Shown here: piece by piece, positions 4,500 to 50,564 of the stretch
Layout: the number at the start of each line of letters is the position of its first letter
How positions within the stretch are numbered: the first letter of the stretch is position 1
Assembly: GCA_964199315.1 (NCBI GenBank)
Contig: OZ116703.1
Location: 14,942,001 to 15,006,000 of the forward strand
Direction of reading: 5' to 3'
Length of the DNA: 64,000 nucleotides
Origin: Orbicella franksi
Lineage: Eukaryota
Translations under genes and position numbers: made by a program
The notes under the pieces: generated by a model
The model's input: only the letters and a program-made list of their open reading frames with translations
Told to the model about the DNA's origin: nothing
The model's database searches: none

Positions 4500-5867
4500 A
4501 TGCTGCTCATAAACGCCGTGAAAGGTGCACGAACGACGCAAGTTAAAATGCTCATAAAAGTTGGAATAAACGTCAATGAAGTAGACGAAAATGGACTTAC
4601 AGGTCTTCTTCACTGCTGCTTTCTTCAAGATGCTCGAGCAAGGATGAAAATTCTGAGATGTTTGATTGCAGCAGGTGCTGATCTCAACAAAAAGGACATT
4701 TATGGACGTACAGTTCTCAGCTGGGCTTGTCTTAGGGGAAGAGTTGAAATGGTTAGATATTTGCTGAACGACCTTCTTTGCATTGATCTCCGAGTGGATG
4801 TCACAGACAAAGAAGGAAACAATGCGCTACTTCTTTCTGTGATGTCTGGCAACTTTCACATTGTGAAAATGATGGTGGAGGTTTTAAGAGACACAGCGCT
4901 TGCTAGTGAGATTAATAAAGCTAACAACGATGGTATGCGGCCTTTAATAGCTGCGTTTTTACGAGGAGATAAACTCTGCGCGCAATTTCTCATAAAGCAA
5001 GCAGGATCTTCAGTGTCGAGTGTCCTTAAGTACCGCAGGGCCCTTCAAAACGGATCTCTTGAGTTTTTTACATGTTCATCGCTTTTGTTTGACTCTCCAC
5101 ACGGTAATTTCCATATTGCTGGAAATGAGCAAACAAGCCAACGTTTTGTTCAATCCACAGAAGACGACATTTTTGGGTTTCTGTTTGCAAAGGATGAAGA
5201 CATGTCCGACGCGCAGACGAGCAAATCCCAAGAAATAAAGCTGGACGACAATAACAATAATCTGGCGCAAAAACATCTTCTGTTGTCAAGAAGATCTGGA
5301 ATAAGAAATCAAGGAAATGTTCTATCATTTCAACCTCAACGACCTCCTTCAGCAGAAACAATTTCAGACATCTCCCAGATAAACACTTTTAGTTCTCCCG
5401 CGGACAACACTTCAAGATCGGCAAATATCACGCGGGAAGTGTCCGATTCGCAGAGCGCTGGTTCGTCGTCACGAACATCCGTTCAAAAGCTGCTGATCCT
5501 GTACGCAGAACAGATTTCACCCTCCTACAGACAAGGCTTACCCATACGTAGATACACGCCCACCCAGCCCGATATCTTTAATGAATCTAGCAGAGACATT
5601 GACTCCAGACGCTCTAGTTTGCTTACGGGGAACGAATCCGACCGAAAACTGCAAGCGTTTGCGGACTCCTTGGCAGGACCTTCACCGGGACTTCTTGGTG
5701 AATCCCTTATGGATCAGCAGCTTCGTATGAAATATGCTCGCAATTCTAGAGCCGCCAGTATGCAAGTTCCAAGGTTACCGGCCCTTTCCGTGGGGCGCGG
5801 GAGAGTCAAAAGAACAAGATCATCCACTATCATGTCGGTTAACAAAAACTACACGAACTCTAACTAA
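4500..5867 (+). CDS. Intronless ankyrin-repeat protein, ANKRD63/ANKRD34-like (paralog 1), 455 aa
   Basis: About five N-terminal ankyrin repeats ([32 protein letters not shown]) and a Ser/Arg-rich disordered tail. Architecture resembles ANKRD63. Confidence 0.85.
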
Positions 5868-7552: not shown

Positions 7553-8469
7553 AACGATACTCGATCAATTAACAGCAAATTTAACAGCCAAAACCAGAAT
7601 TTTTGATTCGAACTTCAATTTCTACGAGACTCCGGACGCCGTCTTCGCATTTCTGTTGTGCACGGTCGCGATCGCGTGACCAAGCAAAAACCTAAACAAA
7701 GAGATCGTCCTCTGAAGTTTGCCAGGTTTCATAACCATTCCCCTCCACTAACTATGGCTACATACGTAGCCTAGTCGGGTGACGAGGCGGTCAAATAGGC
7801 GAAAACGATGCGAACGAAGTTGACACCCTCTCGCTCGTTCTTGCAAACCTTTTTCCCCTCGAACTGGTTTGCCCGTTTGACGTCCTCCTGACCAACTGCC
7901 CCTGGGTGAATCTCGGAATCTGTTGGGGTAATTCAGTTTATGAATTGAAGCTTTTACAGAAAAGGATAAACGTTCCTCAGCTGAGGATTTGAGTGTGAGC
8001 TTACATGAAGTTCAGCTACTCCCACGAATAACGTAAAATTTCAATATCTTTAATTTCCTGAACACAACAACTAACAAGGCTCGATTAACAGCCGCTGTTC
8101 GGGAAAGGAGCCCGCGCAAGCCTACAGCTAACCAGTAATCAGTTATAACTGTTGTCTCTTTTTGATCTCTTTCACCTTTCCTGGCCTCTTGTAACAACCG
8201 CAAAATGAATACTAGCGACCTAAGCAAAGGCATAAGCTTATGAGGAAACCTTCGACATAACAAACCAGCTCCGTCTCTCAAATACAAGGCAACAAAATGG
8301 TGAAATAACCGATTTTCATTGACTGATCTACAGTGTTTGGTCATTATATTGGTAACTACAAACGTTTCAATGTTGTTATTGTTATTAGTTTTCTCCAGCC
8401 ATAGATGATGACCTTTTTCTCGTTTGGCTATAAACGTTCATGACGGCTCTTCAGAGCCAGTGCTAGATG

Positions 8470-8650
8470 CAGTATCATACATTACCGTACAGTATCATAC
8501 ATTACCGTACAGTATCATACATCACCGTACAGTATCATACATTACCGTACAGTATCATACATTACCGTACAGTATCATGCATTACCGTACAGCATCATAC
8601 ATTACCGTACAGTATCATACATTATCGTACAATATCATACATCACCGTAC
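8470..8650. repeat. Minisatellite, 9 x 20 bp (CAGTATCATACATTACCGTA)
   Basis: Nine head-to-tail units counted directly, with only a few substitutions and no spacers. Confidence 0.97.
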
Positions 8651-9083
8651 CCAAATTCGCAACTAGCCAATCAGAATCGAAGCCGTGAATACTGTCATAA
8701 AGTCCTACGATATCAAGTCACTAAGGTCGTGTTCTATTGGGGTCAACCATTTCAGTCGCAACCGCTTTGGGTTGATACGGTTAAAGTTTCTCAATAGAAC
8801 ACTATTCCAACCGTTTTCGCTTGAAACGCGGTAACTCCTGGAAAAAGTCCTTACGCAAGCTACAATCACACAACATAATCACGCAAATGCTTTTTCAACC
8901 GTTTCAACCTGGTTTCAGGTCAGTTGAAAAAGTTGATCAACCAAACCAACCGAAAATGGTTTTTCCCCAATAGAACACGGAAAATTCTAACCAACCAGAA
9001 ACGGTTGATCCCAATAGGACACGACCTAACTGTCACTGATATGGCTGCGATATCATGGTCACTTGGCCGAATTTGGGTACGGT
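8644..9083. mobile_element. Outer MITE-like element with 16-bp inverted ends, interrupted by the 8725-9026 MITE
   Basis: ACCGTACCCAAATTCG (8644-8659) and CGAATTTGGGTACGGT (9068-9083) form a perfect inverted repeat. Confidence 0.65.
8725..9026. mobile_element. PIF/Harbinger (Tourist-like) MITE, 302 bp
   Basis: 24-bp TIR GGTCGTGT(T/C)CTATTGGG(G/A)TCAACC, flanked on both sides by TAA (8722-8724, 9027-9029), the typical Harbinger TSD. Many internal CAACC/CGGTT motifs. Confidence 0.85.
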
Positions 9084-9594: not shown

Positions 9595-9794
9595 AATAGG
9601 CCCTTTGCCCGACCCGGTCACATGGTACAAAATCACACATGCTGGGACGCAAGTTGCACAGTGGGACTTCCAAAACAAAGACAGGTCAAGGTGGACTGGT
9701 AGGAGTTGCTTTGTTTTGGAAGTTCCACTGCGCAACTTGCGTCTCAGCATTGGTGATTTTGTACCATGTGACCGGGTCGTGCAAAGGGCCTATT
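9595..9794. mobile_element. Palindromic MITE with arms of about 90 bp
   Basis: AATAGGCCCTTTGCCCGACCCGGTCACATGGTACAAAATCAC... is inverted as ...GTGATTTTGTACCATGTGACCGGGTCGTGCAAAGGGCCTATT. Possible TA TSD. Confidence 0.85.
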
Positions 9795-9984
9795 AATGCG
9801 CAAGGACAGCGAGTTATGTTCTTGCAAAAACGGCGGCGTCTTACTACCGTCACTGCTTGAAATATTTGTCTGGAAACCGAGAAAAAAAGAGAGAGCACTC
9901 TAATGATCTGAGTGGCGTAAACAAAACAAGACTCTACTGTCTTAAAAGATATACAAGTGTGATGTGTCTATTCTATTGGTGGAA

Positions 9985-12505
9985 TTAGTTGCCTCCTCTG
10001 AATACCTTTGCTACTTCCACCATCAGTCTCATAGTTTGTTCACAGCTTCTCTCTTCTCTCTCACGGTCCATTCTTGTCATTTGAAGTAAAAACTCCCTGT
10101 CTTTTCGATCGCTGTCCTCCATGTAATCTTTAAGAAATTGAAGTGGTTGACCTTTCTTGTCTTGCGCACCGCTATCGTTTGCACGTCTGCTATCTCGGTT
10201 CGATGCTGTCCCGTGGGTCTCTCCCATGCTGTTGTCATTGCTACTTACACCAGAGCCAAAACGCGAATCCCCACCGTGGGATGGAAGAGCCACACTGCCA
10301 CTATTCCCCCTAGAGTTATCATGGGCATTTGCCTGACTGCTTTTAAACACCTTTGCTACTTCCATCATCATTTTCATTGTTCGTTCAAAATTTCTGTCTT
10401 CCCTCTCACGGTCCATTTGTGTCATTTGCAGCAAGAATTCTCTATCCCGTCTGTCGCTTTCCTCCATGTAACCCCTTAGAAACCGAAGCGTGGACACCTC
10501 TTCATCTTCTGCTGGCGCTTTTCTCTTGTTCCTTTTTTTGGGTGGCTCTCTCCTCTGTGGTATTTCTCTCTGATCAGGCAAGGCCTGGCTGACTTCGCCT
10601 GTCAACCCTGTGGTGGTGTCTACGTTAAGCGCTGCACTTGTTGGAATATTAACAACAACCATCTCATCGCTGGCGTTGCTGTCTTCATTCTCTCCACTAG
10701 TTACCAACGCTCTTTCATTCTCTTGAGTTACCGCTGGACTAGCGTCGGTAACATCTAAGGAGCTGTTTCCAAAAGTCTTCCCGAGGACCTCATCGACTTC
10801 GTCAAAGTAGTCGCACGTTCGGTCATCGCCTCCAGATTCGAGGATGCGCTTTTTGGTCGTCTTGTAATCGAACACTATACTCTTCATCCGCCCTTTACAC
10901 TGCTGACCCGAACGGAACGTTTCAAAACCGCACTGCGCGAGTTTCTGATTCAGCAAACGCGCCACCACATCCCAGGCTTTTGCGTTCCTTTGCTGGCTGA
11001 TGTTTTGGTACTGCTCTCCCCAGAGCGCGATAAGAAAGCGCGTCTCGGCATCGGACCAATTTGGAGATCGTCCCGGTTTGACTGGCATGGCTGATATGAA
11101 CGAATCAGCACCTCTCGATGTGGACCCACCAGAAGTTAGGCCGTGTCCGTCACGTGAGATGCTCGTAAAGGCGCTGAAGCGGGATTCTGACGACTGTTGA
11201 GAGGATATTTGGGTACTGCCAGTGGGTGGGGCCACTGTGCTCCTCTCACGTGACGTTTCAGATTGGAAAACTAGGTTTGATCCGCCTTTGTCAGATCCCG
11301 AGGGAGACAGCATTGAGGCAGCGAACTGACTGTAATTTAATTTTGACAAAAACTGTTAATTCGACAGGATGGAAACAGGTGGACATAACTGAGAATTTTA
11401 AAAAGAAGCTGTGGTTTTTTTATGCTGTAAAAAAGAGAAAAACTAGTGAAAAAAGACTGTGCTTTGCATATTCTCTCAGTCTCTATCACACTTTCGTGAG
11501 AAAGGTTTCAGTTTATTCTCATCCTCCATCCACCATCCAGGAGCAGGCTATATTGGAAAAGTGACTTGTTGGGGATTCTCCTTCAGAATAGAGTTTCAAG
11601 TCGCTCGCCAGTTTCGGAGGCTCTGATTTACTTTCCGCGACCAGAGGGGGCTAGCGGGGGGTTGATAAGAAAAACCCCACCAATCCTACGTATGGAGTGA
11701 TCTCGACCCATGCAAGCAGAATTTTACTCGATTGCTTTATCATGTTCATTATTCCCGGTATATCTTTTTCAAATTTCAACCCTTCTACCGTAAGTATTGT
11801 GTATAAATGTATCAGGCATTTTCAGTCTGTCATCAAAGAGGGTAAATAGTGCCGAGCTACATTTGTTTACATCAAATCGCCGTAAATTTTATACAGGTAT
11901 ATTCCGAACAATTTTCGTCGCTGCAAGGTTAAAAATAACACTTTATACTTGTGTGAACGCAAGCTCTGTCTGTCAAATTAAAAGCGAGTTTCTTTCCTCT
12001 TAGAAAATAAAACAAGTTGCCGCGTTTTTACGGTAAAGAAAGTGAAAATCACGGAGAATCCAGGCGTCTTTGTGTTGCTCGCTGTTTAATATTTTTTTTG
12101 CAATTCGAACCCGCATAGAATGCGAATAGTCTTTGTCTGCACTTCAATCGCTCAATTTGGACTACTTTCAAAGACACGTTCTAAAACCATCACCAGCATG
12201 TAAATTCCTCCGAGAAAACGATAAGTGCACGAGTTCTACCGATAGCTTTCTAAAAACGCTTTCTAAACAAGTTCGGGGCGAACCCGATAATAAAACTCGA
12301 TGGAGACGGATGGAGTCGAAACCCATGTGGACGTGAACATAACGCAAGCGGTTTGGATCCGTTTGCAGGTTTTGTGGCTCAGTAAAAAGCTTGTTTAGGG
12401 AGATATCGAAACGCTTGAACTCATACCTAAAATAACATGTATTAGAGAGCTTTCTTACCTGAAGCTTTCAAGGTTTGCGAGCGGACTGCTATCTGGTTTA
12501 TCCAT
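9985..12505 (-). CDS. Myb/SANT-like (trihelix, MSANTD/NAIF1-type) DNA-binding protein, Harbinger ORF1-derived, 463 aa, two exons
   Basis: Exon 1 is 12505..12459 (caaacATGG, MDKPDSSPLANLESF, CAG|GTAAG donor). Exon 2 is 11329..9985 after an AAATTACAG acceptor, phase 2 matched. The ORF-track start at 11349 is a TTG. Trihelix motif NWSDAETRFLIALW...AWDVVA...RSGQQCKGRMKSI, an NLS-like KKRNKRK, and two C-terminal helical repeats. Confidence 0.88.
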
Positions 12506-12821
12506 GTTTGAACACAAGGGAAATCGATACCAGTCAAATGTACGACGCGAAAGTGAATAAGCCTTGTCAAAACTCGCGCGCTGATTGGTTTACGAACAAG
12601 ACACAAAGAATTAGCAATTCTAAACTGGTGTAGATTTACAAGCGTCGAGAACCAAAAGCGTCCACATCTAGCTGCGTCAGTTAGACTCGTTTCACTTTGA
12701 AATTCGCTTAGAAGACGCACACCGGACTAGCTTTGGAAAACCCATTCTCTACAGCAATAAGGGTTTCTTTTGGTTGGCGAACTCAGCTGACTTCGTGGGA
12801 TCGAAAGAGCTTGAACTCTTG
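12506..12821. promoter_or_regulatory. Putative bidirectional promoter shared by the SANT gene and the HARBI1-like gene
   Basis: Only about 320 bp lie between divergent ATGs. CCAAT box (CTGATTGG at about 12581), CGCGCG, TGCGTCA and raised CpG content. Function is inferred. Confidence 0.6.
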
Positions 12822-14120
12822 ATGAAAATGGAGTATCAAAGTGTTGTTGACACGAACGGGGCTCAATTCTTTCTTTATGCTTTAGCTGCCATTCAAGCTT
12901 CAAGGACAAATAATCACCGAGCAAAGCTCATTCGAAGATATCGCACACTCAAGAAGCGAAGGATTCGAACAATGACGGCGTTACTAGCATACATCGAACA
13001 ACAGAAGCGTATACCGAAATTACCGTCTGCTCCCGAAGCTGGTCCGCCGAAAAGAGTTTGGGTTTTGCAAAGGGATCAATTTATGTTCGAGGAGTTACTA
13101 GCCGGAAATCTTCCAGAGGAAACATGGCATCAAAATTTCCACGTTTCAAAGAAGACATTTTTTAAGATTTGCGACATAGTTCGCCATGAATTATCTAGGC
13201 AAGACACGAATATGCGACCCTCTGTGTCCTTGGAAAAAAGAGTTGCAGTCGCGTTAAATCGCCTTGCAACTGGGAGTTGTTACACTGCTTGTGGTGTAAG
13301 CTTCGGGCTCCCCAAATCTACGGCGAACGTTGTAAAAAATGAATTTTGTGATATTTTGAGAAGGAAAGCGGCCAGTTTTATCAAGTTTCCAAAGAGCGAC
13401 GACGAAGTACGAAAGGTTATTGGTGGGTTTGAAGACATCTCTGTTTTCCCTCAGGTGGTCGGTGCGTTAGATGGTACGCACATTAAAATCATAGCACCCA
13501 AAGAAAACAAGTACGACTTTTTAGGGAGAAAGGTGTTTTATAGTGTTCTCGTTCTGGGGGTGGCAGACAGCTACTGCAAGTTTATTCACGCAAGTGCAGG
13601 ATGCCCTGGTGCAGTGAGTCGCGCAGAAATGCTACGGAACAGTGCGTTACAGCGTGACATTCAAAATGGCGTTATCTTGAATACTCCAGGTCGTTTGATT
13701 GACGGCAATGAGGTGAAGCCCCTTATAGTCAGCAACTCTTCTTTTGACTTGAGTTCTTGGCTGATGACACCCTATGTACCAACACCAAATGTTACCCCTA
13801 GTGAGAGCAGTTTTAATGCTGCATTGAGCTCTGCAAGAGAAAAGATTGTACAAGCATTTGGCTTGTTGCGGGGCCGTTGGAGATGTCTTTTGGAAACACT
13901 CAAAGAGGATACCCTAAGGGTTCCCACCACTGTTATTGCATGTTGTGTTTTGCACAATCTGTGCATCGACCTCGGGGACAATGCACCCGTTGAGCCTGTT
14001 GTCACTCAGGATGACATGGAGCTTTTTGATGACGACAGTGATGACTGGTCAACTATGGAAGAAGGAGGCAAAGAGTTAAGAGAAAAAATAAGAAACTATT
14101 TAGACACATATGGGTATTAG
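12822..14120 (+). CDS. Harbinger transposase-derived protein (HARBI1/ALP1-like, DDE_Tnp_4 fold), probably nuclease-dead, about 430 aa
   Basis: Intronless ORF; first ATGs at 12822 and 12828 (track start 12774 is TTG). Family motifs FHVSKKTF, EKRVAVALNRLATG, FPQVVGALDGTHI, WLMTPY, AFGLLRGRWRCL and ACCVLHNLC are present. Catalytic-site changes are described in findings. Confidence 0.92.
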   Translation: MKMEYQSVVDTNGAQFFLYALAAIQASRTNNHRAKLIRRYRTLKKRRIRTMTALLAYIEQQKRIPKLPSAPEAGPPKRVWVLQRDQFMFEELLAGNLPEETWHQNFHVSKKTFFKICDIVRHELSRQDTNMRPSVSLEKRVAVALNRLATGSCYTACGVSFGLPKSTANVVKNEFCDILRRKAASFIKFPKSDDEVRKVIGGFEDISVFPQVVGALDGTHIKIIAPKENKYDFLGRKVFYSVLVLGVADSYCKFIHASAGCPGAVSRAEMLRNSALQRDIQNGVILNTPGRLIDGNEVKPLIVSNSSFDLSSWLMTPYVPTPNVTPSESSFNAALSSAREKIVQAFGLLRGRWRCLLETLKEDTLRVPTTVIACCVLHNLCIDLGDNAPVEPVVTQDDMELFDDDSDDWSTMEEGGKELREKIRNYLDTYGY

Positions 14121-16168
14121 TACACTGTCCATTTATGAACCTTTTCTTTGCCATCGAAATTTGAATCATTGTCAGATATAACTTGTAGCGTTACATGTAG
14201 CTCAGGATTAGTACTTCTTTAAGTTCTTGTAGTCCTGTTTGTGTTCTTCTTCTGTCATTCTAAGTAAGATACAAGCACAACTTGGAATACAGTTTTGTCA
14301 TGCAAATAAACAATTTTATAATATTTTCTGTAATATCCACAGTATCTAAAGTAGAGATACCAGGAAAAGATTTTTACTGATCTTTTATGAAGGATGTACT
14401 TCATATTTTCCTCGTATAGATTTTTTTGGGAATAACATGTTCACTTCTCCATTCAGTTCTCAGTACATTCTCCTGCCAGCTTTACAGACAGAAGTTTAAA
14501 AAATTGAAAATGCACCCTCACAAATTACAACAGTCTGTATACAATCATCTCAAGTTTAGTGTGGAAAATAGTTTGCTAGGTTCCTTGACTTTGCTGATTG
14601 TGATTCAGTGTTGTCATTAAGTTTTGATTCACCTGTGGCCTTGATCTTCACACTTGTAGCAAACTTGTTTCCTTTTGAGTTAATTGTATCAACTACAGGC
14701 ACCTTCAGCCATAACATCAAGGGCCCACCAAAGAGTCATCAAACACACTTAGCCATAGCAGCTGTTATGAATTACAGCCCTTACTGACTGACAGCCTTGT
14801 TCAATTCTAGAAATGAAATTCTTGAAGAGAATTTATGAGACATTGGGAACATTTCTCTCAGTGCTTTGTTTTTAAAATGACTGAACTTAATCTACACCTG
14901 GGTTACTGGACGAGTGAAATGTCTGAAGTTTTAACTTTGCTGGATTTTGGCTAGTGGTTCTTGTGATTGGCTTGTCCACAAGGCCATCTTGAAGATTTAA
15001 TTTTTTATGTCTCCAAACTTCTCTCCCCATCTCCTTTCCCCGCCCAGGCCCCTGTTGTATAACCTTGAAGACATAATTATATTAGCTGCATACATTTGCT
15101 GTTCAAAGATTTTCATGCAATCCTCTATTGAAGTTCAAGCTTTGAGTAAGCCTGAAGCTGCTACAGATACTCAGATTGGGAAAAGCAGACAAAGTAAAGA
15201 AGTAAGCATGCTGTGAGAAAGCTAACACAGAGTGTTGAATGAGTAGAAAGTATAACACTTTTACTTCTGCTTTAATAATAAGCTGGAAAAGCAAAATTTG
15301 AAACGAGACCTGTGAAATGAGATGGAATCTGCGAATTGACAGGATAAAAGTGGCCCTAAGCGTATACAAATGCGCTGTCAAAAACAGGAAAGTAGTACCA
15401 TTCTCAAAGAGAAAACAAAAATTGATTACTACACTTTGATCACTGGTAGAGTTACTTTGCTCCCCCCACCCTACTGTTGTAATGAAGAACAGCGCTTTGT
15501 CAATGTTTGTGTGACATTTCGCGTGGCGTTTTATTATTGATTTAATAGTTTAATATTACACTTTATCAAACATGATAACATTGATTGACATTGCAATTTG
15601 AGCAGCTCGATGCAGGAATCTGTTTTCAGTTAACGTATCGGTATGGATAGCTTCCCGTTTTAAAGGTTTTTACAGTTTAATTGGACTCTGGAATCCCGTC
15701 ACGAAGTGAGTCAGTTTTAAAGTTGGCTTTTTTCCGTAACAATTGTGTAATACCGCGTGGTTTACTCAGTGAAGTCTGTTCCTGTTTCTTGGTTGATACG
15801 ATGTATTAAGGCCCTTTATTTTCGGTTAGTTGCTGTTGTTTAAGTATGCCATTTGCTGTGTTTATTTCAGATCGAATAAAAATCTTGTAATTTATACGAT
15901 TCACGGGAATTCAGAGTTAGGGACATTTTGGCGGTTTTCGTCCGACGGACCACCCACCCCATTCCCCCCGGGCTTATATGGAGAGGGACCCGGCTTTTTT
16001 ATAACTGTTCGCAAGCACGGTGGTGTTTTGCTTCTTATAACGATTACCATATTTATCTTCGTCCAGCTTTTCTGCAGAGACTGTTGTCTAGAGACGTTCT
16101 TATGTTTCTTGCATTAATTTGATCGAGCGCAGTCAAACAAAGGAGAAGGAGAAACAATAATTACTACG

Positions 16169-16796
16169 GAGGGGGACATGGGGATTTGCGGTGTTGCGGT
16201 GTTGATGTTTTTTTTAATGCGGTGATGCGGTGAATAAAATCTCAACTTGCGGTGTTGCGGTGTTCTCAAACCCTACGGTGTGCGATGTTTGTGTTTTTCA
16301 CGATGCGGTGTTCGGTGAAATGAAATTGTTTGCGGTGCTGGGGTTTTTTTGATTTAGCTTTCTGAAACCTAAATTTGACCTAAATTTAGCATGTAAACTT
16401 CGTTAATCGAAACTAATTTATGACAAACACGTACCATTGAGGTTAATAATTTGTAAAAAAATACAGACCATCACTTTCTAGTCAATCTTCAATATGCTTC
16501 GGCTGCCAATCCGAAACTGTTTTCATTTATACGTAACTTGACAAGTAACTCGACCTCTGCCACCCGGAGCTCAGTGTGCGGTAGACACGTGGAGGAGCGA
16601 GGACAGAAACAACGCGTTTATTTTGTGGAAAATTGTTGAGGTATAAAAGTATTATTTTACGTGTAGACGAACGAATCATGGCGCTGAAAGTACGTGTTGC
16701 GGTGACGGTGTTTCGTTGACTTTTCTTGCGGTGATGCGGTGTTCGTTAATTTTTTTTCCGGTGTTGCGGTGTTTAGAACCCCCAGATGTCCCCCTC
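16169..16796. mobile_element. Non-autonomous DNA element with 11-bp TIR and 6-bp TSD, superfamily unassigned
   Basis: GAGGGGGACAT...ATGTCCCCCTC flanked by ACTACG on both sides (16163-16168, 16797-16802). Repeated GCGGTG(T/A)TGCGGTG motifs near both ends. Confidence 0.8.
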
Positions 16797-22390: not shown

Positions 22391-23822
22391 ATGATTTTGA
22401 TTTACGCTTTTTTGTGTCTGTTCTGTTGTAGTTTACTGTTTCAGCCAGCAAGTAGCGTGACGAATGCATCGAACCAAGTTGCGTCCAACAAAACGCCAGT
22501 TTGTCCCCCGTCGACCAAATGCCACAACGTGCACTTCAACAACTATTACTCAGGACCACCAAACAAAGACATCAAGGCGCATCTCATCAAAATACAGAAT
22601 CAACTCGCAGATGTACAGAAAAAAATCGATGCAATGACCGGGAACAAAACTTTTAAGCCAGGTAAGTGAACACTACGGATAAAATTCTTTCGCTTTCTCG
22701 TTGCTCGCTGTCATGTACTGAAATAACTCTATACTTTTGCAGTGAAGAAAAACTGTGCTGAGCTGTATAAATCTGGCGAAAGAATCAACGGTGTTTACAC
22801 AATCGACCCCGATGATTCAGGTGCCTTTGACGTCTTCTGCGACCAAACAACAGCCGGTGGAGGGTGGACGGTATTCCAGAAAAGATTGGATGGCTCCGTT
22901 GATTTCAATCGTGGTTGGGCCGACTACAAGCGTGGCTTTGGTAATCTGAATGGCGAGTTTTGGCTGGGATTGGACAAAATTAACCGCCTGACGAAGGCAA
23001 AGAACAGACTGCGAGTGGATCTCGAAGATACACAAGGAAAGACTGCATACGCTGATTACGACATGTTCGCTGTTGCAAGTGAAAGAAATAACTATAAACT
23101 CAGTCTTGGAACATATTCTGGTAGGCGATGCAACCTGTTTGCTTAGCCGGTTTTAGATCAGTTTTTGTAAGCTGTAAATCCGCCAAGTTCTCTCTCCTCC
23201 AAAAGAAGAAAGCATCAATTTATACCGTCAGTTAATGTTCATTAAACTGAAACATGCATGCTTTGTTTTGGGAAGGTAAGGATTCACAAACATATTCCCA
23301 TTTTTACGTGTAGTGACTCACATAATCACCACGCGATTAAGTTCCGCTGATCTGCCACAAAAGTAGATGTAGGGCTTTCAGTGCTTTGCCTGATCCCCAC
23401 CCCACCCCCTGGTCACTGAGTTTTGTTCTCTCCTCTCCGAAAATGAAACGCAGTTTCCCCAAAGACCTCTAATCGTTCCCATGCAAGTCGAAACTTCCAG
23501 AAGGGCCGCGGTTCTCGTGCTCCAGCGCGTTAATCGCTGTGTTTTTTGTACGCCTTTATTTTCAGGTACTGCTGGTGATTCATTGGGCTATCATCGTAAC
23601 TCACCGTTTTCAACCAAAGATCGCGACAATGATAACAATAAGGGAAACTGCGCCACGGTATATAAAGGAGGCTGGTGGTTCAATTCGTGCGTAGTTGCCA
23701 GCCTCAATGGCTACTATTACAATGGGCCTCACAAATCCTACCACGATGGCGTCAACTGGCGTTATTGGAAGGGTGGAAGCTACTCTGCTAAGAGGGCAGA
23801 GATGAAGATCAGGCTCGCGTGA
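22391..23822 (+). CDS. Secreted fibrinogen-related domain protein, copy 2, intact, 301 aa
   Basis: Exons 22391-22661, 22743-23120 and 23566-23822 with GT-AG phase-1 junctions and a complete FReD. Confidence 0.92.
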
Positions 23823-25490: not shown

Positions 25491-26321
25491 TCAATAAGCC
25501 GAGTGCTTCACACCACCTCCAGACCTGCAATTTCGAGGATACGAATTTGTAAGCTGTTCTGTGTACAGACCAAATAACCTCGGGAGATTACAAGAGTTTT
25601 GCCGCAGTCCTGTGTGCGGCTTGTTCTTTTTCTGTCCTAGTGAGGCGCTGAATGCGTCTCGCAGTAGATTTGTCTCGTCGGCACATGGTGTTACATGGCC
25701 TTCGTTCAAAAGCACCTCCGCGCAGTCACTAAATTTTTTGCTGTATGCGATCTTTAACGCACTTTTTCCTCGATTGTTGACTCTGTTTACGTCAAGTCTG
25801 TTCCTTCTGAAAACTTTTGATATCGTTTTAACAATGTTTACATTGCCCGACATGCTTGCCAACATTAAGTTCGTGTTTCCCTCAAAATCAATGCTTCCCA
25901 ATGCAAGGTCTACCTCGGGATGGCTGAAAAACAACTTGACCATATCCTCTCGTCCCAGAAGACAGGCCCACGACAGAGCCGATCGACCAAACTTGTCCAA
26001 TAATTTTACTTTTGCGCCGTAGTTCATCAGCATCTTCGCGGTCCTTCGACGAAGTTTAATGTTTTCTAAAAACATGGCTCTAATCAACGCTGTTTGCCCA
26101 CTGTCCAAATCTTTGCAGTTCACGTTAACACCTGCGTCCAACAGCAGGCGAACTTGCCGAAGTCTCCCTTGGCTAACTGCTTCTAAGAGAATTCTTGGTC
26201 TTCCACTTACAACAGAATGACTCTCGTTGCCGCAGTTTTGCAAATGAGTGTCTATCCACGCTACCTTTCTATCGTCAGGCGGTTGCCTTTGGTGACCGAC
26301 AGACAACGAAGGAGCCAGCAT
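25491..26321 (-). CDS. Intronless ANKRD63-like ankyrin-repeat protein (paralog 2), 276 aa
   Basis: LLEAVSQGRLRQV...GQTALIRA...GRSALSWAC...GNTNLMLAS...GKSALKIA. Confidence 0.85.
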   Translation of the reverse strand: MLAPSLSVGHQRQPPDDRKVAWIDTHLQNCGNESHSVVSGRPRILLEAVSQGRLRQVRLLLDAGVNVNCKDLDSGQTALIRAMFLENIKLRRRTAKMLMNYGAKVKLLDKFGRSALSWACLLGREDMVKLFFSHPEVDLALGSIDFEGNTNLMLASMSGNVNIVKTISKVFRRNRLDVNRVNNRGKSALKIAYSKKFSDCAEVLLNEGHVTPCADETNLLRDAFSASLGQKKNKPHTGLRQNSCNLPRLFGLYTEQLTNSYPRNCRSGGGVKHSAY

Positions 26322-28668
26322 AGCTAGTCCCCTTCTAGGCTTCGTTTAAGTCTCGCAAAGACTGTTTACTTCGTATTCAGCGGAACTCTAACCTGCTTTC
26401 AATGGACTCACAGGGTGATCTGTTGAATTGTGACACCGTTTCATATCATTGTAACTGCTCGTTCAACTCACTGTTGATTAAAATTCATCTAATAATTTCT
26501 TGTCCCATTGTCTCCAAGCTCTTTGTTGTGACAAGAACGCCAATGGATGATATGGGGTTTTATTGCACGGTAGGTCAGGCATGACTGGCCTTTTGAATTT
26601 ACTGATTGGGCAAGAATAAATGTTCTAACAAGTCAGGGTCACGTATGAAGGCTTTGCTATTACTAGACTAAAAATATACGCCAAATATTGATGTGGTAAT
26701 TTTGTTACTTGTAGTTTCGTAACCAAGAGGGAGATATACATAAATGATTTGCGATCTATTTGCATATATACACACACAATCTTTAAGGACAGAAGGATAC
26801 TTTATCAAACTCGCATGACAAAGAAGAGATGTGAATTAATTATTCTGGGGATAAGGCAGGAAACTCAACACGTTGTTACCTTCTTGTCACGTATACAATC
26901 TGAAGAAATACAGAAGTGTTTTCTCGATAACAAGTTTGTTTCATACTGTAAAACTTGAAACAAAGTTGTTACTCCGGTCCTCACCTTCCAAAAAGGAAGT
27001 TATCAAACTACCTGACTTATTTTTTTTTTTGACGTCATCCTGACAGAATAGTTATAATCATAATAACTTTCAACTCCCGAGCTTTCGCCCAGTTTTCTAA
27101 TGAAATTATGAGTTTCGGAGAGTCTTCAAGAATTTTCACAAAGAATCGGTGTTAGAAACAGTGGACGGTTTACCCCCGTCTATCGTCTTTCGACTTTGAT
27201 GGTTGACTCTGACTTTCGCCTCTCACAAACCGTCAACCGCTATTTTAGACAAACAAGCCGGCGTATTTTGAAAGTCATCCTTGACTAGACTCTCAGCGTT
27301 CTTTTACTGACAGCCACATGAAATAACAAACAAGCAGGCAAGGGGATAGGCATAACATAATGAGGGCAACCTTTGTAGGCAGTGTTGAAGTGTACGAAGA
27401 CCGCCAATCGTACTTCCTATTTCACGATGTCCTGCGCACGGAGTCACTTCGAGACGGTAAAAAGTACAAAAATCACTTTAAAGTACATTTTAATCCATTT
27501 TGGTTGAATTGCTGTCTATCTTTCTCATCGAAAGGTGGAGCATTTTTAAGATGATAATAGATGGATTCTTCAATCACAGATTTTGAGAACTTTAGGAACA
27601 TGTTTGACTGGCACCATATATATTCAAGCCAACTTTTCCCAAAAGGCATCGTGCGTTCAGATTGTTAGTACTTTGCTTGCATTGAACCCTGATTTGTTTG
27701 TTAATAAGTGCTAAATACATATGAATTATCCTCCTGTCTGAGAGAGTTGAGCACGCGATTTTCGCAAAAGAAGTTGCTAGGCAACAATGGAGACATCGTG
27801 GAGCCGAGCTGACGGGGTCATTACATCGAACTACGTGAGTAGTAAAGCCAATTTTAAAGTGGAAATTCGCTGATAACGTAACGTGGGGCAAATTGAAATC
27901 GAAGAGCCAAGAGGAGTTGATTTTTTTCAGCTAATTTTACCTTTCACGTATCGCTTAAAAATCACTCTTTGTTTACTCTTATCTGATGGTATTAGTCGAG
28001 GAGTTGATGCCCCGGGGTTGATGCTCACAAGCATCTAATTAAACATCGGCAGTTTGATGGCCACAGATCGAACATTATCGCTAGGAAACTTGTAAAGCAA
28101 GTCTAAAATAAAACTATGACTTTCCACGAATTCTCCAACTTGTTTTTTTTTCAATAATCTGTCCTCTCGCGTTTTCTACGGAGTCGTTTGCTTTATTTGA
28201 CACGTGAGTTAGTTGGTTTTAACTAAACTCTAATCTTGTTATCCACCGCCGCAAATAATTTCATGCTGTTTATTGCTCAAAGGAAGTGCGTGTAAGACAA
28301 AGTTAAGTACATCAAGACAAAGCAAGTACAGGGAAGACAAAAGGCTATTGTGTTCGAATAATAGCTCGTGCGTATTGTAAGGGTTTTAGAGGAGCTCTCA
28401 AATAAGATTGAATGCTAATTCACTCTTGATTCGTGCTAACAGGCTAGCATTACTGTCAAGACTCTATTGTAACCAAAATCCGCCTTTACGTAAGTGCTTT
28501 GCAATTGGATTCTATAAAAGTTTTTCACAATGGAAGTAATCCTCAAAGGAGTTAGGCCCATTAGCTTCAAGGTATAAATGAATGTGACTAATATATGATG
28601 TATTGACTTGTTTTGCTAACGGTTTCTATAGTATTCCAGGACTGCGCGAGGAGAAATCAAACTTGGCC

Positions 28669-30198
28669 ATGTTGTTGGACGCCGTGTCAAGAGGTAGAAT
28701 CTACCAAGTGAACTTCTTACTTGAGTCAAGTTATGAGGATGTGAACAAGGTGGACGAAAACAGACAGACTCCTCTGATGAAAGCGATTTTTCTTCCCGAC
28801 AAAATGCACCGAACTCGCTACAAAATCGTCAAGATTTTACTCGAACACGGAGCGCACGTCAATGTTGTTGATCGCGAGGGGAAGACAGCCCTCATGTGGG
28901 CATGTATTCGCGGACAGGAAAATGTCATCCGAAAAATCCTGGACTCTTCTCTTTTGGATCTTGATTTGAACAAGGGAGACAAATTCGGCAACACGGCGCT
29001 ATTCTACGCCGCCTCCAGCGGCCAAGTAAATACTGTGAAGATGCTTGTTACAGCGTTAAAGCGATTTGGATTGGATATCGATAAAAAGAATGCGCAGGGA
29101 ATGACTCCGATTCTACAAGCTACTAAACAGGGGCACGATGCGTGCGCTCAAGTCCTCATGACCGAAGGAAAAGCTTCTCTTACGATCAGAGACCCCGAAA
29201 CTTTTCTCAACACTAAAGAATGGGCTGAAAAGCGTTCTTTGACCAATTTGTCAGAGCTGATTGCGCGGAGGAGCCCGTCTCCACAACTCGCTGTTCAAAA
29301 CGTTGAAAACGATTCAGAGCCAGATGGACAAACACCAAGACCGGCTTCAGATTTAGCAAATAAGAATATTCAGAACAACTTTGTTCAAGAAAACAGGGCT
29401 AATGAGATGGCACTTTCACTGCAACAAAGAAGACACTCAATTGACAAAAAGATTAGAAGGACAAGCGAGACATCCTTGCCTACGTCACCTCAGTGTCAGG
29501 AGAACACGTTGCCATCAGAAACCAAAAAAGCGGGGTCGGTTTCCCCCAGAAGTATCACTACTACTGTGTCTTTGACAAGGAGGAAAACTGAGCAGATGGC
29601 GAAAATTAAAGGCGGAGCGGTTCCTCTCACTGCAAAATCAGAAATGTGTAGACTTCTCAGCCTGTATGGTATTCAACATTCAGAGTCGTACAGACATAGT
29701 TTTGATCCAATTCTGTTACCACCAAGTGGGTACTGGCCCGATCCACTGGCTCATCTCAGAGACAATGCGTCGTCAGTCACAGATGACCAAGAACTCGAGA
29801 TGAACTTGTTAGACCTTCTTAGACCACGCGGCTCGGGTCGTCGGAGGTCTTCGGCTTTTCCCGGAGCTCCCGAAATGGGTCGCAGAGGTAGCAACGTCAG
29901 TTTTCGTGATGGTCGACGGGGATCGACGATGCTCGGACTTGGTCCGGGAATGGGAAAGAGAGGCTCTATTTCTCCAACAATGCTGGGAAACAAAAACTTT
30001 CTTGAAGCTCCTGGCTTGTCGTCGCGAAGAACGACTTTGAGTGCGAACGCAACGCGAGGAACCACTTCTCTACTGAGTCCTTTCGACAGAAGACGATCGT
30101 TAATGCCCAGGGGCTCTGAGCAGACTAGACCCACTCTCCCTCGGAGGACAACCACGCACTTAGTACCGAGTTTAGGACACATTGTGGAGACGCCTTGA
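28669..30198 (+). CDS. Intronless ANKRD63-like ankyrin-repeat protein (paralog 3), about 509 aa
   Basis: First ATG at 28669 (MLLDAVSRGR, aligning with the start of paralog 1). Motifs RQTPLMKA, GKTALMWAC, GNTALFYAA and LKRFGLDID..GMTP, close to ANKRD63 as recalled. RRSS/RRGS-rich tail. Confidence 0.88.
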   Translation: MLLDAVSRGRIYQVNFLLESSYEDVNKVDENRQTPLMKAIFLPDKMHRTRYKIVKILLEHGAHVNVVDREGKTALMWACIRGQENVIRKILDSSLLDLDLNKGDKFGNTALFYAASSGQVNTVKMLVTALKRFGLDIDKKNAQGMTPILQATKQGHDACAQVLMTEGKASLTIRDPETFLNTKEWAEKRSLTNLSELIARRSPSPQLAVQNVENDSEPDGQTPRPASDLANKNIQNNFVQENRANEMALSLQQRRHSIDKKIRRTSETSLPTSPQCQENTLPSETKKAGSVSPRSITTTVSLTRRKTEQMAKIKGGAVPLTAKSEMCRLLSLYGIQHSESYRHSFDPILLPPSGYWPDPLAHLRDNASSVTDDQELEMNLLDLLRPRGSGRRRSSAFPGAPEMGRRGSNVSFRDGRRGSTMLGLGPGMGKRGSISPTMLGNKNFLEAPGLSSRRTTLSANATRGTTSLLSPFDRRRSLMPRGSEQTRPTLPRRTTTHLVPSLGHIVETP

Positions 30199-49235: not shown

Positions 49236-50564
49236 ATGGCGAATATGTTTGCAAGACTTGTTACCGCAGTGTTAAATGTCATGAGCACAGAGACTTCGTG
49301 GGAGCAAACAAAGACATTTGCCGGACATGTAACTGCAAGAATAGGTTTTACAGCTAACGCTACGCCACCGGTATTTAGCCTACACGAAGAAATGCTCTTA
49401 AAGATTTTAAGTTTTCTTTCCCCTGAAGATTTGCTCCGCTTTTCTCGAGTTTCCCGAATGTGCTACCGACTATCATTAGATCGGTCCCTGTGGAGGCATG
49501 TTGATCTGAGGAGCTTCGCTTCACGTCTGAACGATCCTGCAAAACTGGAACTGCTCATTTTCAAACGATTTTCAAACAAAATACGATGCCTCGATTTGAG
49601 TGGATTTACCGTGTCAGAGGGAAATCTTAACACCCTTGCTATTTCTTGCAGACAGTTGCGGGTTTTGAAACTGAAAAGTGTAACTTTTACGACTGATTCA
49701 AACAGAGACATTCAGAGGCATAACTCAGAACAAAGTGCGATTTTCCCAGGGAAACTCAATTGCCTTGATATTAGATTTTCACAAGGCCACCCCGGCGTGT
49801 TTCGAGTTATCGCCTCAAACCTCAGCAAAGTCGAAAGTCTAGGACTCTGTGACGCTTTTCTATACACCCTTCTTGAGGGTGGAATTTTGGAAGCAACCAT
49901 TGAAAGCATGAACAACCTGCGCGTGCTGGATCTCAGCCACTGCCGCTTACTGAAGGAAAACACCTTGGCTCTGTTCGCGCGCTGTAACAAGTTGGAAGTT
50001 TTGAGAGTGCGCAGATGTCCTATGCTGACGGGCAGTTCTGTTCAAGAGTTTCTGGAGTCTTGTACTCGTCTTAAGGCTTTAACACTCGACGGCATCAGCA
50101 TAGACGACCAAACTCTTCAAAGCATAAAGTGGGACAGTACTTTCTTGACTTCTCTTGAGTTGGGGTGGTGTCCGCTGATCACCCCAGTCGGCCTCAAGTT
50201 AACCCTGCGCAGGGTGTCAAAGATCCCAAGCTTGGAGTATTTAGGACTGTGTTCAATAGGAGGTGGAAAGGCATTGAATGATGAAATTCTTCTTGAGATG
50301 GCTGCCGGTATTTTGAAAGGTCAGTACGGGAGGCTAACAGAGGTTAACCTAAGTTGTTCGTGGCGCATAACAGAGGATGGCCTTAAGAGGCTTCGCCCCT
50401 TGGTGGGGACATTGGATACCACAAGTTGTCCAGTTTCGAACGGATTTCCAATGAGATACGACAAAAACAATAACATTGAACGAAGTACCAGAAAAATAAG
50501 CAAAGGAAAGCACATTTCTAGTCACTTTACCAGATTTGAATGGTGCCTAGAAACGCCACTTTGA
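49236..50564 (+). CDS. Intronless F-box/leucine-rich-repeat protein (paralog 1), 442 aa
   Basis: F-box FSLHEEMLLKILSFLSPEDLLRFSRVSRMCYRLSLDRSLWRHVDL, followed by Cys-containing LRRs (CLDLSG, VLDLSHC, LRVRRC, LELGWC, VNLSCS). Confidence 0.9.
   Translation: MANMFARLVTAVLNVMSTETSWEQTKTFAGHVTARIGFTANATPPVFSLHEEMLLKILSFLSPEDLLRFSRVSRMCYRLSLDRSLWRHVDLRSFASRLNDPAKLELLIFKRFSNKIRCLDLSGFTVSEGNLNTLAISCRQLRVLKLKSVTFTTDSNRDIQRHNSEQSAIFPGKLNCLDIRFSQGHPGVFRVIASNLSKVESLGLCDAFLYTLLEGGILEATIESMNNLRVLDLSHCRLLKENTLALFARCNKLEVLRVRRCPMLTGSSVQEFLESCTRLKALTLDGISIDDQTLQSIKWDSTFLTSLELGWCPLITPVGLKLTLRRVSKIPSLEYLGLCSIGGGKALNDEILLEMAAGILKGQYGRLTEVNLSCSWRITEDGLKRLRPLVGTLDTTSCPVSNGFPMRYDKNNNIERSTRKISKGKHISSHFTRFEWCLETPL

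Follow-up and report, generated by a model that had tools for sequence, protein, structure and literature searches.

Organization of the Gene Pair

The DNA analyzed here is a stretch of 64,000 nucleotides from the stony coral Orbicella franksi (GenBank assembly GCA_964199315.1, contig OZ116703.1, positions 14,942,001 to 15,006,000 of the forward strand), hereafter called the window; all coordinates are positions in it. Two neighboring open reading frames (ORFs) of the window encode proteins of the PIF/Harbinger type. One is located at 9985..11349 on the minus strand (454 aa) and the other at 12774..14120 on the plus strand (448 aa). In the mechanical ORF list they are 1425 bp apart. Pfam assigned Myb_DNA-bind_4 (PF13837, E = 2.7e-16) to the former and DDE_Tnp_4 (PF13359, E = 1.1e-28) to the latter. 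Myb/SANT-like proteins and DDE_Tnp_4 transposases are both PIF/Harbinger proteins, and the two genes of a mobile element of this group are thus present. They are called SANT and Tnp below. The Myb/SANT-like trihelix DNA-binding domain occupies 10786..11064 (-), corresponding to ORF residues 96-188. The DDE_Tnp_4 RNase H-like domain occupies 13467..13958 (+), and its catalytic site is degenerate, based on Pfam, the alignment and the structural model.

It is very likely that SANT and Tnp are a co-domesticated PIF/Harbinger pair of stony corals. In this reading, a SANT protein and a catalytically dead transposase are encoded at a fixed locus with a conserved shared promoter, and together they would form a nuclear adaptor. 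A preliminary description, made from the sequence alone, had proposed that the two genes stand head-to-head on a shared promoter of about 320 bp, and that SANT has a hidden first exon, noting that both listed starts are TTG. The TTG starts were found in the ORF list, and the exon, the spacing and the shared promoter were confirmed overall, as described below.

The search with the Tnp protein returned full-length relatives with graded identities of 99, 95, 86-84, 81, 79-75, and 71-70%, followed by an abrupt gap to 48% or less. The orthologs of the SANT protein range from 100 down to 56% identity. Several matches of the SANT and Tnp queries were on the same contigs, and seven orthologous loci (L001 to L007) were retrieved.

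Hidden First Exon and Transcripts

The start of SANT is at 12505 on the minus strand, where the sequence reads CAAACATGG (CAAAC-ATG-G, with A at -3 and G at +4). The 47-nt open stretch from this ATG ends with CAG/GTAAGA at 12459, and the acceptor TTACAG/T at 11329 preserves the frame. The coding part of exon 1 is therefore 12459..12505 (-), consisting of MDKPDSSPLANLESF and 2 nt, as both the sequence and the RNA junction show. Intron 1 (11330..12458, -) is 1129 nt long with GT..AG ends. Exon 2 spans 9985..11329 (-), from the acceptor to the stop codon (9985-9987), and is supported by the ORF, RNA and orthologs.

The predicted splicing in phase onto 11329 was observed exactly in RNA data from three independent studies. 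The joint between 11329 and 12459 skips 1129 nt, whose ends are CT..AC on the plus strand, that is, GT..AG on the minus strand. Two raw polyA reads of run X24 contain it, as do one polyA contig of X12 (shorter side, 68 nt) and one coral metatranscriptome contig of X1 (shorter side, 46 nt). Run X22 had no raw reads on this stretch and counts as no test of the junction. SANT RNA contigs are otherwise colinear with the genome over 9850-11329. Tnp RNA contigs are colinear over 12647-14600 with no joints, and Tnp is therefore a single-exon gene. It extends over 12828..14120 (+) and encodes 430 aa from the conserved ATG, based on the ORF, RNA and orthologs.

Exon 1 is conserved in the seven loci with the same length, the ATG and the GT donor. 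Its peptide of 15 residues is conserved as MDK-x-[DE]-[SG]-[SN]-... The acceptor YAG/T is kept in 7/7 loci. The intron could be measured in five loci, and in these it is at the same position, with a length of ~936-2481 nt.

Both genes are covered by reads or contigs in X24, X12 and X1, which agrees with their expression from the conserved shared promoter. The word depths of the contigs in the SANT and Tnp regions are 80.7 and 89.4 for X12, and 41.9 and 84 for X1, although depth in three libraries is a poor measure. Coverage in X24 is low for both genes. Some X1 contigs of low depth (word depth 4-4.7 versus 42-84 for exons) lie inside the SANT intron, at 11303-12153. They are unspliced pre-mRNA or DNA carry-over.

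Shared Divergent Promoter

The shared divergent promoter, together with both 5' untranslated regions (UTRs), occupies 12506..12827. The distance from the SANT ATG is 317 bp to the first ATG of Tnp (12822) and 323 bp to the ATG at 12828, which all orthologs share, close to the spacing of ~320 bp proposed before. The ATG at 12822 is in frame, two codons upstream of 12828, and is present in Orbicella franksi. No ATG was found in the Tnp 5' UTR upstream of it.

The SANT transcript reaches at least 12526 at its 5' end, and the 5' ends of Tnp transcripts are at 12647 (X1 contig) and 12678 (X12 contig). The 5' ends of both transcripts abut adapter sequence. The divergent starts, 12526 or beyond (-) and 12647 (+), are therefore at most ~120 bp apart, well within the 1 kb used to define a bidirectional promoter. 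The core promoter corresponds to ~12527-12646.

The sequence of this region is strongly conserved. A 450-bp query around exon 1 recovered every orthologous locus, with 71-84% nucleotide identity. In the seven-way alignment (A2), the ATG context, the length of exon 1, the GT donor, the promoter blocks CGCTGATTGG, ATTAGCAAT and AAAC..GGTGTAGATTTAC, and the Tnp start AAAATGGA are invariant or nearly so. The CCAAT box noted in the preliminary description is real: it lies on the minus strand inside the CGCTGATTGG block (ATTGG on the plus strand, 12584..12588), and its columns are invariant in the seven loci. Two further conserved blocks, ATTAGCAAT followed by AAAC..GGTGTAGATTTAC, are found at 12610..12639, where nearly all columns are invariant; they stop 8 nt before the Tnp 5' end at 12647. 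The region had also been called CpG-rich, which is only partly appropriate. The observed/expected ratio of CpG is 1.25 in the interval between the two ATGs and 1.60 between the transcript 5' ends, versus 0.84 in the whole window, but the GC content is just 0.41-0.44.

Synteny, Selection and Phylogeny

The pair was expected to be linked in other anthozoans, and it is linked at the same place in seven coral loci. SANT (-) followed by Tnp (+) is the order in the window and in 7/7 loci. An ankyrin-repeat (Ank) gene on the plus strand is upstream of SANT in the window (4500..5867, Pfam Ank) and in L001 to L006. The Ank protein of the window is 76-45% identical to those upstream of SANT in L001, L002, L004, L005 and L006, and the Ank proteins follow the same identity gradient as the pair (76 to 45%). 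In L007, the contig begins so near SANT that the upstream side is missing; the one Ank gene on it is downstream and is a ~35% match, no better than the other Ank genes of the window. On the other side, a Fibrinogen_C gene is downstream of Tnp in the window (exon at 22742..23146, +, Pfam E = 7e-48), L003 and L006. Between the window and L006, the Fibrinogen_C exon is 88% identical. No copies at non-orthologous sites were seen among the loci recovered for the pair, each of which has SANT (-) beside Tnp (+).

Named orthologs are from Pocillopora verrucosa, Montipora capricornis, M. foliosa, Porites harrisoni, Acropora digitifera, A. muricata, A. cervicornis and Stylophora pistillata. The genera Acropora, Montipora, Porites, Pocillopora and Stylophora span Complexa and Robusta, the two deep lineages of stony corals, and the locus is therefore older than crown Scleractinia. 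With the seven loci and the named coral proteins, the pair shows microsynteny across distant species in the sense of PMC9710019.

Both genes are under purifying selection, another property used in PMC9710019. Pairwise dN/dS (the ratio of nonsynonymous to synonymous substitution rates), calculated by the Nei-Gojobori method and not by a likelihood codon model, ranges over 0.045-0.149 in Tnp and 0.073-0.141 in SANT; the dS values begin at 0.65 and extend to saturation. In the maximum-likelihood tree, the coral Tnp orthologs form one clade with a support of 100 in the Shimodaira-Hasegawa-like approximate likelihood ratio test (SH-aLRT). The stem of this clade is 0.81 substitutions per site, versus 0.02-0.12 for its inner branches. 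The clade nests among catalytically intact cnidarian-type transposases, and fish HARBI1 (P0072) is in the outgroup. Coral Tnp thus does not cluster with vertebrate HARBI1.

Public annotations of the orthologs (P0046, P0351 and P0353) are inconsistent. The Stylophora protein PFX23161.1, named "Angiopoietin-related protein 7," consists of the last 163 aa of the Tnp-derived gene fused to the fibrinogen neighbor. The A. cervicornis protein KAK2557246.1 (720 aa), named "Trafficking protein particle complex subunit 13," is likewise from a model fused to a neighboring gene. The A. digitifera ortholog is named "putative nuclease HARBI1" by NCBI, which is contradicted by the tree. The other public names are "uncharacterized" or "putative nuclease HARBI1."

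Loss of the Catalytic Residues in Tnp

The orthologs were aligned (A1) with relatives that keep the Harbinger signature DGTH ... GSxHD ... GDxAY ... ExAFGxLKxRW. The first Asp (13470-13472) is kept in every coral ortholog except one, which has Glu. The second Asp (13620-13622) is Arg in the window and His or Phe in other orthologs. The Asp of GDxAY (13734-13736) is replaced by Asn in all orthologs, and the catalytic Glu (13848-13850) is Val or Ile in all orthologs, with Val in the window. The Stylophora fragment has the same Asn and Val replacements. The relatives at 48% identity or less keep the second Asp, the Asp of GDxAY and the Glu. The intact DDE triad of a mobile element is thus absent from the coral orthologs. 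Judged from these residues, the Tnp-derived protein is no longer able to cut DNA.

The rest of the protein is preserved. The helix-turn-helix (HTH)-like region and the remaining RNase H-like domain are highly conserved among the orthologs, as is the N-terminal helix. The structural model of Tnp (predicted local distance difference test score, pLDDT, 83; predicted template modeling score, pTM, 0.75) contains a 52-residue N-terminal helix at about residues 11-62, a helical region of the DNA-binding type, and a beta-sheet core. Foldseek with this model against PDB found weak RNase H-like matches (Metnase, Mos1, retroviral integrases and Tn5; best E = 7.7e-3), and neither a close solved relative nor a functional hint. 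The look-up in ESM Atlas indicated membership in the Harbinger family and nothing further.

Features of the SANT Protein

Across 12 orthologs, the Myb/SANT domain hardly varies, and this holds for W92, W104 and W120 too. The invariance of the three tryptophans argues for retained DNA binding by SANT. A basic stretch, PPKKRNKRK, similar to a nuclear localization signal (NLS), is conserved. The linker is variable, and an acidic-then-hydrophobic motif, SDE-[MI]VVVNIPT (window 10660-10690, residues ~218-232), is invariant in it; it looks like a SUMO (small ubiquitin-like modifier)-interaction motif.

The C-terminal region contains two helical modules in direct repeat (D2). Module 1 (10346..10488, -) is common to transposon Myb proteins, and module 2 (10001..10143, -) is its duplicate. 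They are ~48 aa each, 78% identical at the nucleotide level, and spaced by 345 nt. Helices are predicted at residues 276-334 and 395-444, with pLDDT of 80-88. Both modules are present in 7/7 loci. Module 1 aligns to the extreme C-terminus of the Myb protein of the mobile element L010, described below, and of P0151. The Myb proteins of related mobile elements have one C-terminal module and lack module 2. Module 2 is therefore a duplication that occurred after domestication and before the divergence of corals. The module corresponds to the half of the Ping Myb protein that binds the transposase (PMC7282668). By this correspondence, the duplicated module is the candidate site at which the dead transposase would dock.

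A near-perfect hairpin, similar to a miniature inverted-repeat transposable element (MITE), follows shortly after the SANT stop codon, at 9595-9794. Its 86-nt arms are 93% complementary and its loop is 28 nt. The X12 contig runs ~199 nt beyond 9850, and so the SANT 3' UTR appears to extend into the hairpin.

Mobile Relatives

Four catalytically intact relatives with sequence context (L008, L010, L011 and L012) cover the clades of the tree next to the domesticated clade. In 4/4 cases, the transposase and Myb genes are tail-to-tail. L010 and L008 are complete elements of ~3.6-3.7 kb, bounded by terminal inverted repeats (TIRs) and with intact DDE residues. The TIRs of both, 25-26 nt in length, include GTGTTT[TA]CACT, and L010 has a subterminal copy of the motif at each end. 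The TIRs differ between mobile families (GTGTTTTCACT versus GTGTTTACACT).

The L010 Myb protein aligns to residues 88-332 of SANT (E = 8e-37), with 32% identity over 257 aa, and lacks a counterpart of exon 1. The L010 transposase and Myb protein are each among the closest non-orthologous relatives of the pair; the transposases of L010 and L008 are 40-48% identical to Tnp. Through L010, the pair can be assigned to one transposon family, as was done for pairs in PMC9710019, though not necessarily to a single insertion.

Among the catalytically intact relatives, P0019 is the one closest to the dead clade; it is on a JGI metagenome contig (L009). It lies 77 bp from a bacterial-looking Ribosomal_L10 fragment (L009:1-150, -, E = 1.2e-9), and the contig is probably a chimeric assembly.

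No TIRs like those of a mobile element flank the coral pair. No credible inverted repeat was found around it, as the best candidates (20-27 nt at 70-82%) are at the chance level. The motif GTGTTTWCACT has no hits with up to two mismatches in the shared promoter of the seven loci. It occurs 8 times in the window versus 3.8 expected, with no pair in TIR orientation around the genes. Searches by blastn-short with the ends of L010 and L008 against the intron, promoter and flanks returned chance-level words only. Construction of the promoter from fused transposon ends was considered and is unsupported by the TIR-motif and blastn-short searches.

Other Features of the Window

Further ORFs at 25491-26321 (-), 28603-30198 (+) and 49236-50564 (+) encode two ankyrin-repeat proteins and one F-box/LRR protein. 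The two ankyrin ORFs are ~36-37% identical to the Ank gene at 4500-5867, and form a small ankyrin-gene cluster with it. Between Ank and SANT there is a tandem array of a 20-nt unit, CAGTATCATACATTACCGTA, in ~11 copies (8450-8669). Nested inverted repeats at 8719-9083 (35 nt at 86%, plus perfect 15- and 16-nt arms, spanning ~300-430 bp) look MITE-like. Clusters of short TTGCGGTG / GGTGTTGCGGTG repeats are found ~2 kb downstream of the Tnp gene, at 16177-16282 and 16694-16782.

Origin of the Pair and Alternative Explanations

Synteny, purifying selection on both genes, loss of the catalytic residues and the absence of TIRs together agree with the proposal of a co-domesticated Harbinger pair. The preliminary description had further regarded the head-to-head order as the original arrangement of the transposon, simply retained. 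Such retention is rather unlikely. The head-to-head order of DDE and MADF genes is called canonical for Caenorhabditis Harbingers (PMC13668399), and P0019, the immediate sister of the dead clade, is on a 1.4-kb contig without gene-order information. Against this, the four intact relatives spanning sister clades are all convergent, and two of them are complete TIR-bounded elements. The L010 Myb protein has nothing that corresponds to exon 1, and there is no remnant of the TIR motif in or around the locus. Because the mobile relatives are tail-to-tail, the head-to-head layout of the coral pair is probably derived.

The Caenorhabditis order and P0019 are also points against our reading of the pair as a whole, and there are others. 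Binding between SANT and Tnp, as well as DNA binding by SANT, is inferred by analogy. The SANT model, built from 12 orthologs, is poor outside the two C-terminal helices (mean pLDDT, 47.5). Co-regulation of the pair rests on three libraries and the promoter geometry. The transcript 5' ends are derived from the ends of contigs and fragments and not from cap analysis of gene expression (CAGE).

Another explanation is that the pair is a brake on mobile Harbingers: SANT recognizes their TIRs, and the dead transposase occupies them without cutting, in a dominant-negative manner. Coral-derived assemblies still contain catalytically intact relatives with TIRs, a second Montipora protein among them, and conservation is strong both in the Myb domain, tryptophans included, and in the HTH region of the transposase. 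However, transposon families turn over and their TIRs differ, whereas the domesticated DNA-binding domain has hardly changed throughout crown Scleractinia. A change of function is suggested by the long stem of the dead clade, and the characterized domesticated pairs act on host chromatin complexes (PMC9392472, PMC7282668). We consider the brake unlikely.

It is also conceivable, with a probability slightly lower again, that the two proteins no longer cooperate. In that case, they would be adjacent owing to shared promoter elements and would have separate functions, with SANT, for example, as a stand-alone transcription factor. There are precedents for both halves: Myb-only domestications, such as the MSANTD family (PMC9392472), and transposase-only domestications in insects (PMC9710019). 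Yet both genes are intact in the seven loci with nearly equal dN/dS. The C-terminal module, which in the Ping Myb protein belongs to the transposase-binding half (PMC7282668), is conserved and even duplicated, and the N-terminal helix of the transposase is conserved as well.

An active or recently inactivated Harbinger copy, as two intact ORFs with the right domains might suggest, can practically be dismissed, given the fixed syntenic position in distant coral families, the lack of TIRs, the replacement of two of three catalytic residues in all orthologs, saturated dS and dN/dS of ~0.1.

Proposed Mechanism

For the co-domesticated pair, the following scenario is proposed. The head-to-head layout and exon 1 would have arisen during or after domestication, by rearrangement or by juxtaposition of two copies. 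The promoter region would then have been captured, with SANT gaining a new first exon beside the Tnp promoter. The SANT mRNA reaches the ~120-bp core promoter via the 47-nt exon and the 1.1-kb intron, and the shared promoter would keep both subunits at matched levels.

In Harbinger complexes, the SANT-like protein binds DNA and the transposase, and mediates nuclear import (PMC9392472, PMC7282668). The mechanism suggested here is modeled on zebrafish Harbinger3, rice Ping, HARBI1-NAIF1, ALP1-ALP2, and HDP1-HDP2. By analogy with them, the SANT protein, with its three tryptophans, basic NLS-like stretch and two C-terminal helices, would bind specific DNA. It may hold the dead transposase through the N-terminal half of Tnp and carry it into the nucleus. 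As a complex, SANT and Tnp would serve as a sequence-specific adaptor in the nucleus, with chromatin as the most likely site of action. The conserved tryptophans, the C-terminal helices and the Tnp N-terminal helix may be taken as indirect support for the interaction between SANT and Tnp and for DNA binding by SANT.

A fuller version of this scenario is possible, albeit rather improbable in all its parts. The pair would be a nuclear regulator specific to the stony-coral lineage, retained from a time before Complexa and Robusta split and not found here outside Scleractinia. Its layout would be secondary, SANT would have gained the 47-nt exon to plug into the Tnp-side promoter, and the helix that would bind the transposase would have been doubled so that one SANT protein holds two dead transposases.

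Comparison with Known Domesticated Pairs

Adjacent co-domesticated PIF pairs have been described from insects: DPLG7-DPM7 in Drosophila, APLG1-APM1 and APLG2-APM2 in Anopheles, and LPLG2-LPM2 in Lepidoptera (PMC9710019). In A. gambiae, APLG1 and APM1 are 97 bp apart and APLG2 and APM2 are 179 bp apart (PMC9710019). The linkage of the coral pair is therefore not unprecedented, and the premise of the preliminary description that linked domesticated pairs are unusual is weakened. The insect pairs resemble the coral pair in that both genes are domesticated, adjacent and syntenic, lack TIRs, and are under purifying selection; the insect pairs are also single-copy, lack target site duplications and are co-expressed (PMC9710019). 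The coral pair differs as an independent cnidarian event that is far older (crown Scleractinia versus about 28-100 million years). Its partner protein is of the Myb_DNA-bind_4 type, whereas that of the insect pairs is MADF. Unlike for the insect pairs, a divergent promoter reached via a new 5' exon, catalytic losses and a duplicated SANT module are documented.

ALP1-ALP2 of Arabidopsis, which is associated with PRC2, resembles the coral pair in the loss of DDE residues (two of three in ALP1) and in a Myb-derived partner that binds the transposase-derived protein (PMC7282668). Unlike the coral genes, ALP1 and ALP2 are not presented as neighbors. ALP2 has lost the tryptophans needed for DNA binding, whereas coral SANT keeps W92, W104 and W120. 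The ALP pair has partners such as MSI1/PRC2 (PMC7282668), which for the coral pair would be conjectural. HDP1-HDP2 of Arabidopsis, in the IDM histone acetyltransferase complex, were likewise co-domesticated from one family with loss of the triad (PMC5339849, PMC7282668). Their Myb partner has retained the residues for DNA binding and serves as the tether of the complex, and coral SANT may function similarly. HDP1-HDP2 belong to the plant lineage and have an independent origin, and no shared promoter is described for them (PMC5339849, PMC7282668).

HARBI1-NAIF1 of vertebrates is another Harbinger-derived pair, in which NAIF1 binds both DNA and HARBI1 and brings the latter into the nucleus (PMC9392472). 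It is not orthologous to the coral pair, as the coral clade is far from fish HARBI1 in the tree. HARBI1 keeps the DDE triad, and the HARBI1 and NAIF1 genes are on different vertebrate chromosomes. Unlike the coral pair, the mobile coral elements L010 and L008 have intact DDE residues, convergent genes, a single C-terminal module and no 5' mini-exon. Searches of the literature returned no report of co-domestication of Harbinger genes in cnidarians, nor of a bidirectional promoter for such a pair. The coral pair is a new and ancient case of a known class, at least as old as crown Scleractinia.

Biological Implications

The two-protein design of Harbinger has repeatedly been turned into host chromatin factors, as in ALP1/2, HDP1/2, HARBI1/NAIF1 and the insect PLG/PM pairs. 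The coral pair adds an old cnidarian case, common to complex and robust corals, whose anatomy is exceptionally clear, with a dead catalytic site, a kept DNA-binding domain, a duplicated module, a conserved promoter and a mini-exon. The two genes have stayed linked over a very long time, though their layout is probably not the transposon's own. The findings also correct the public annotation, namely the naming as HARBI1 in Acropora and the fused models in Stylophora and A. cervicornis. If the fuller version of the scenario is true, the host rewired the two genes of a transposon into a stoichiometric, co-transcribed module, which would have its targets either in the chromatin of corals or in sister Harbingers that are still mobile. 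As a candidate for a DNA-binding complex specific to corals, the pair is amenable to study.

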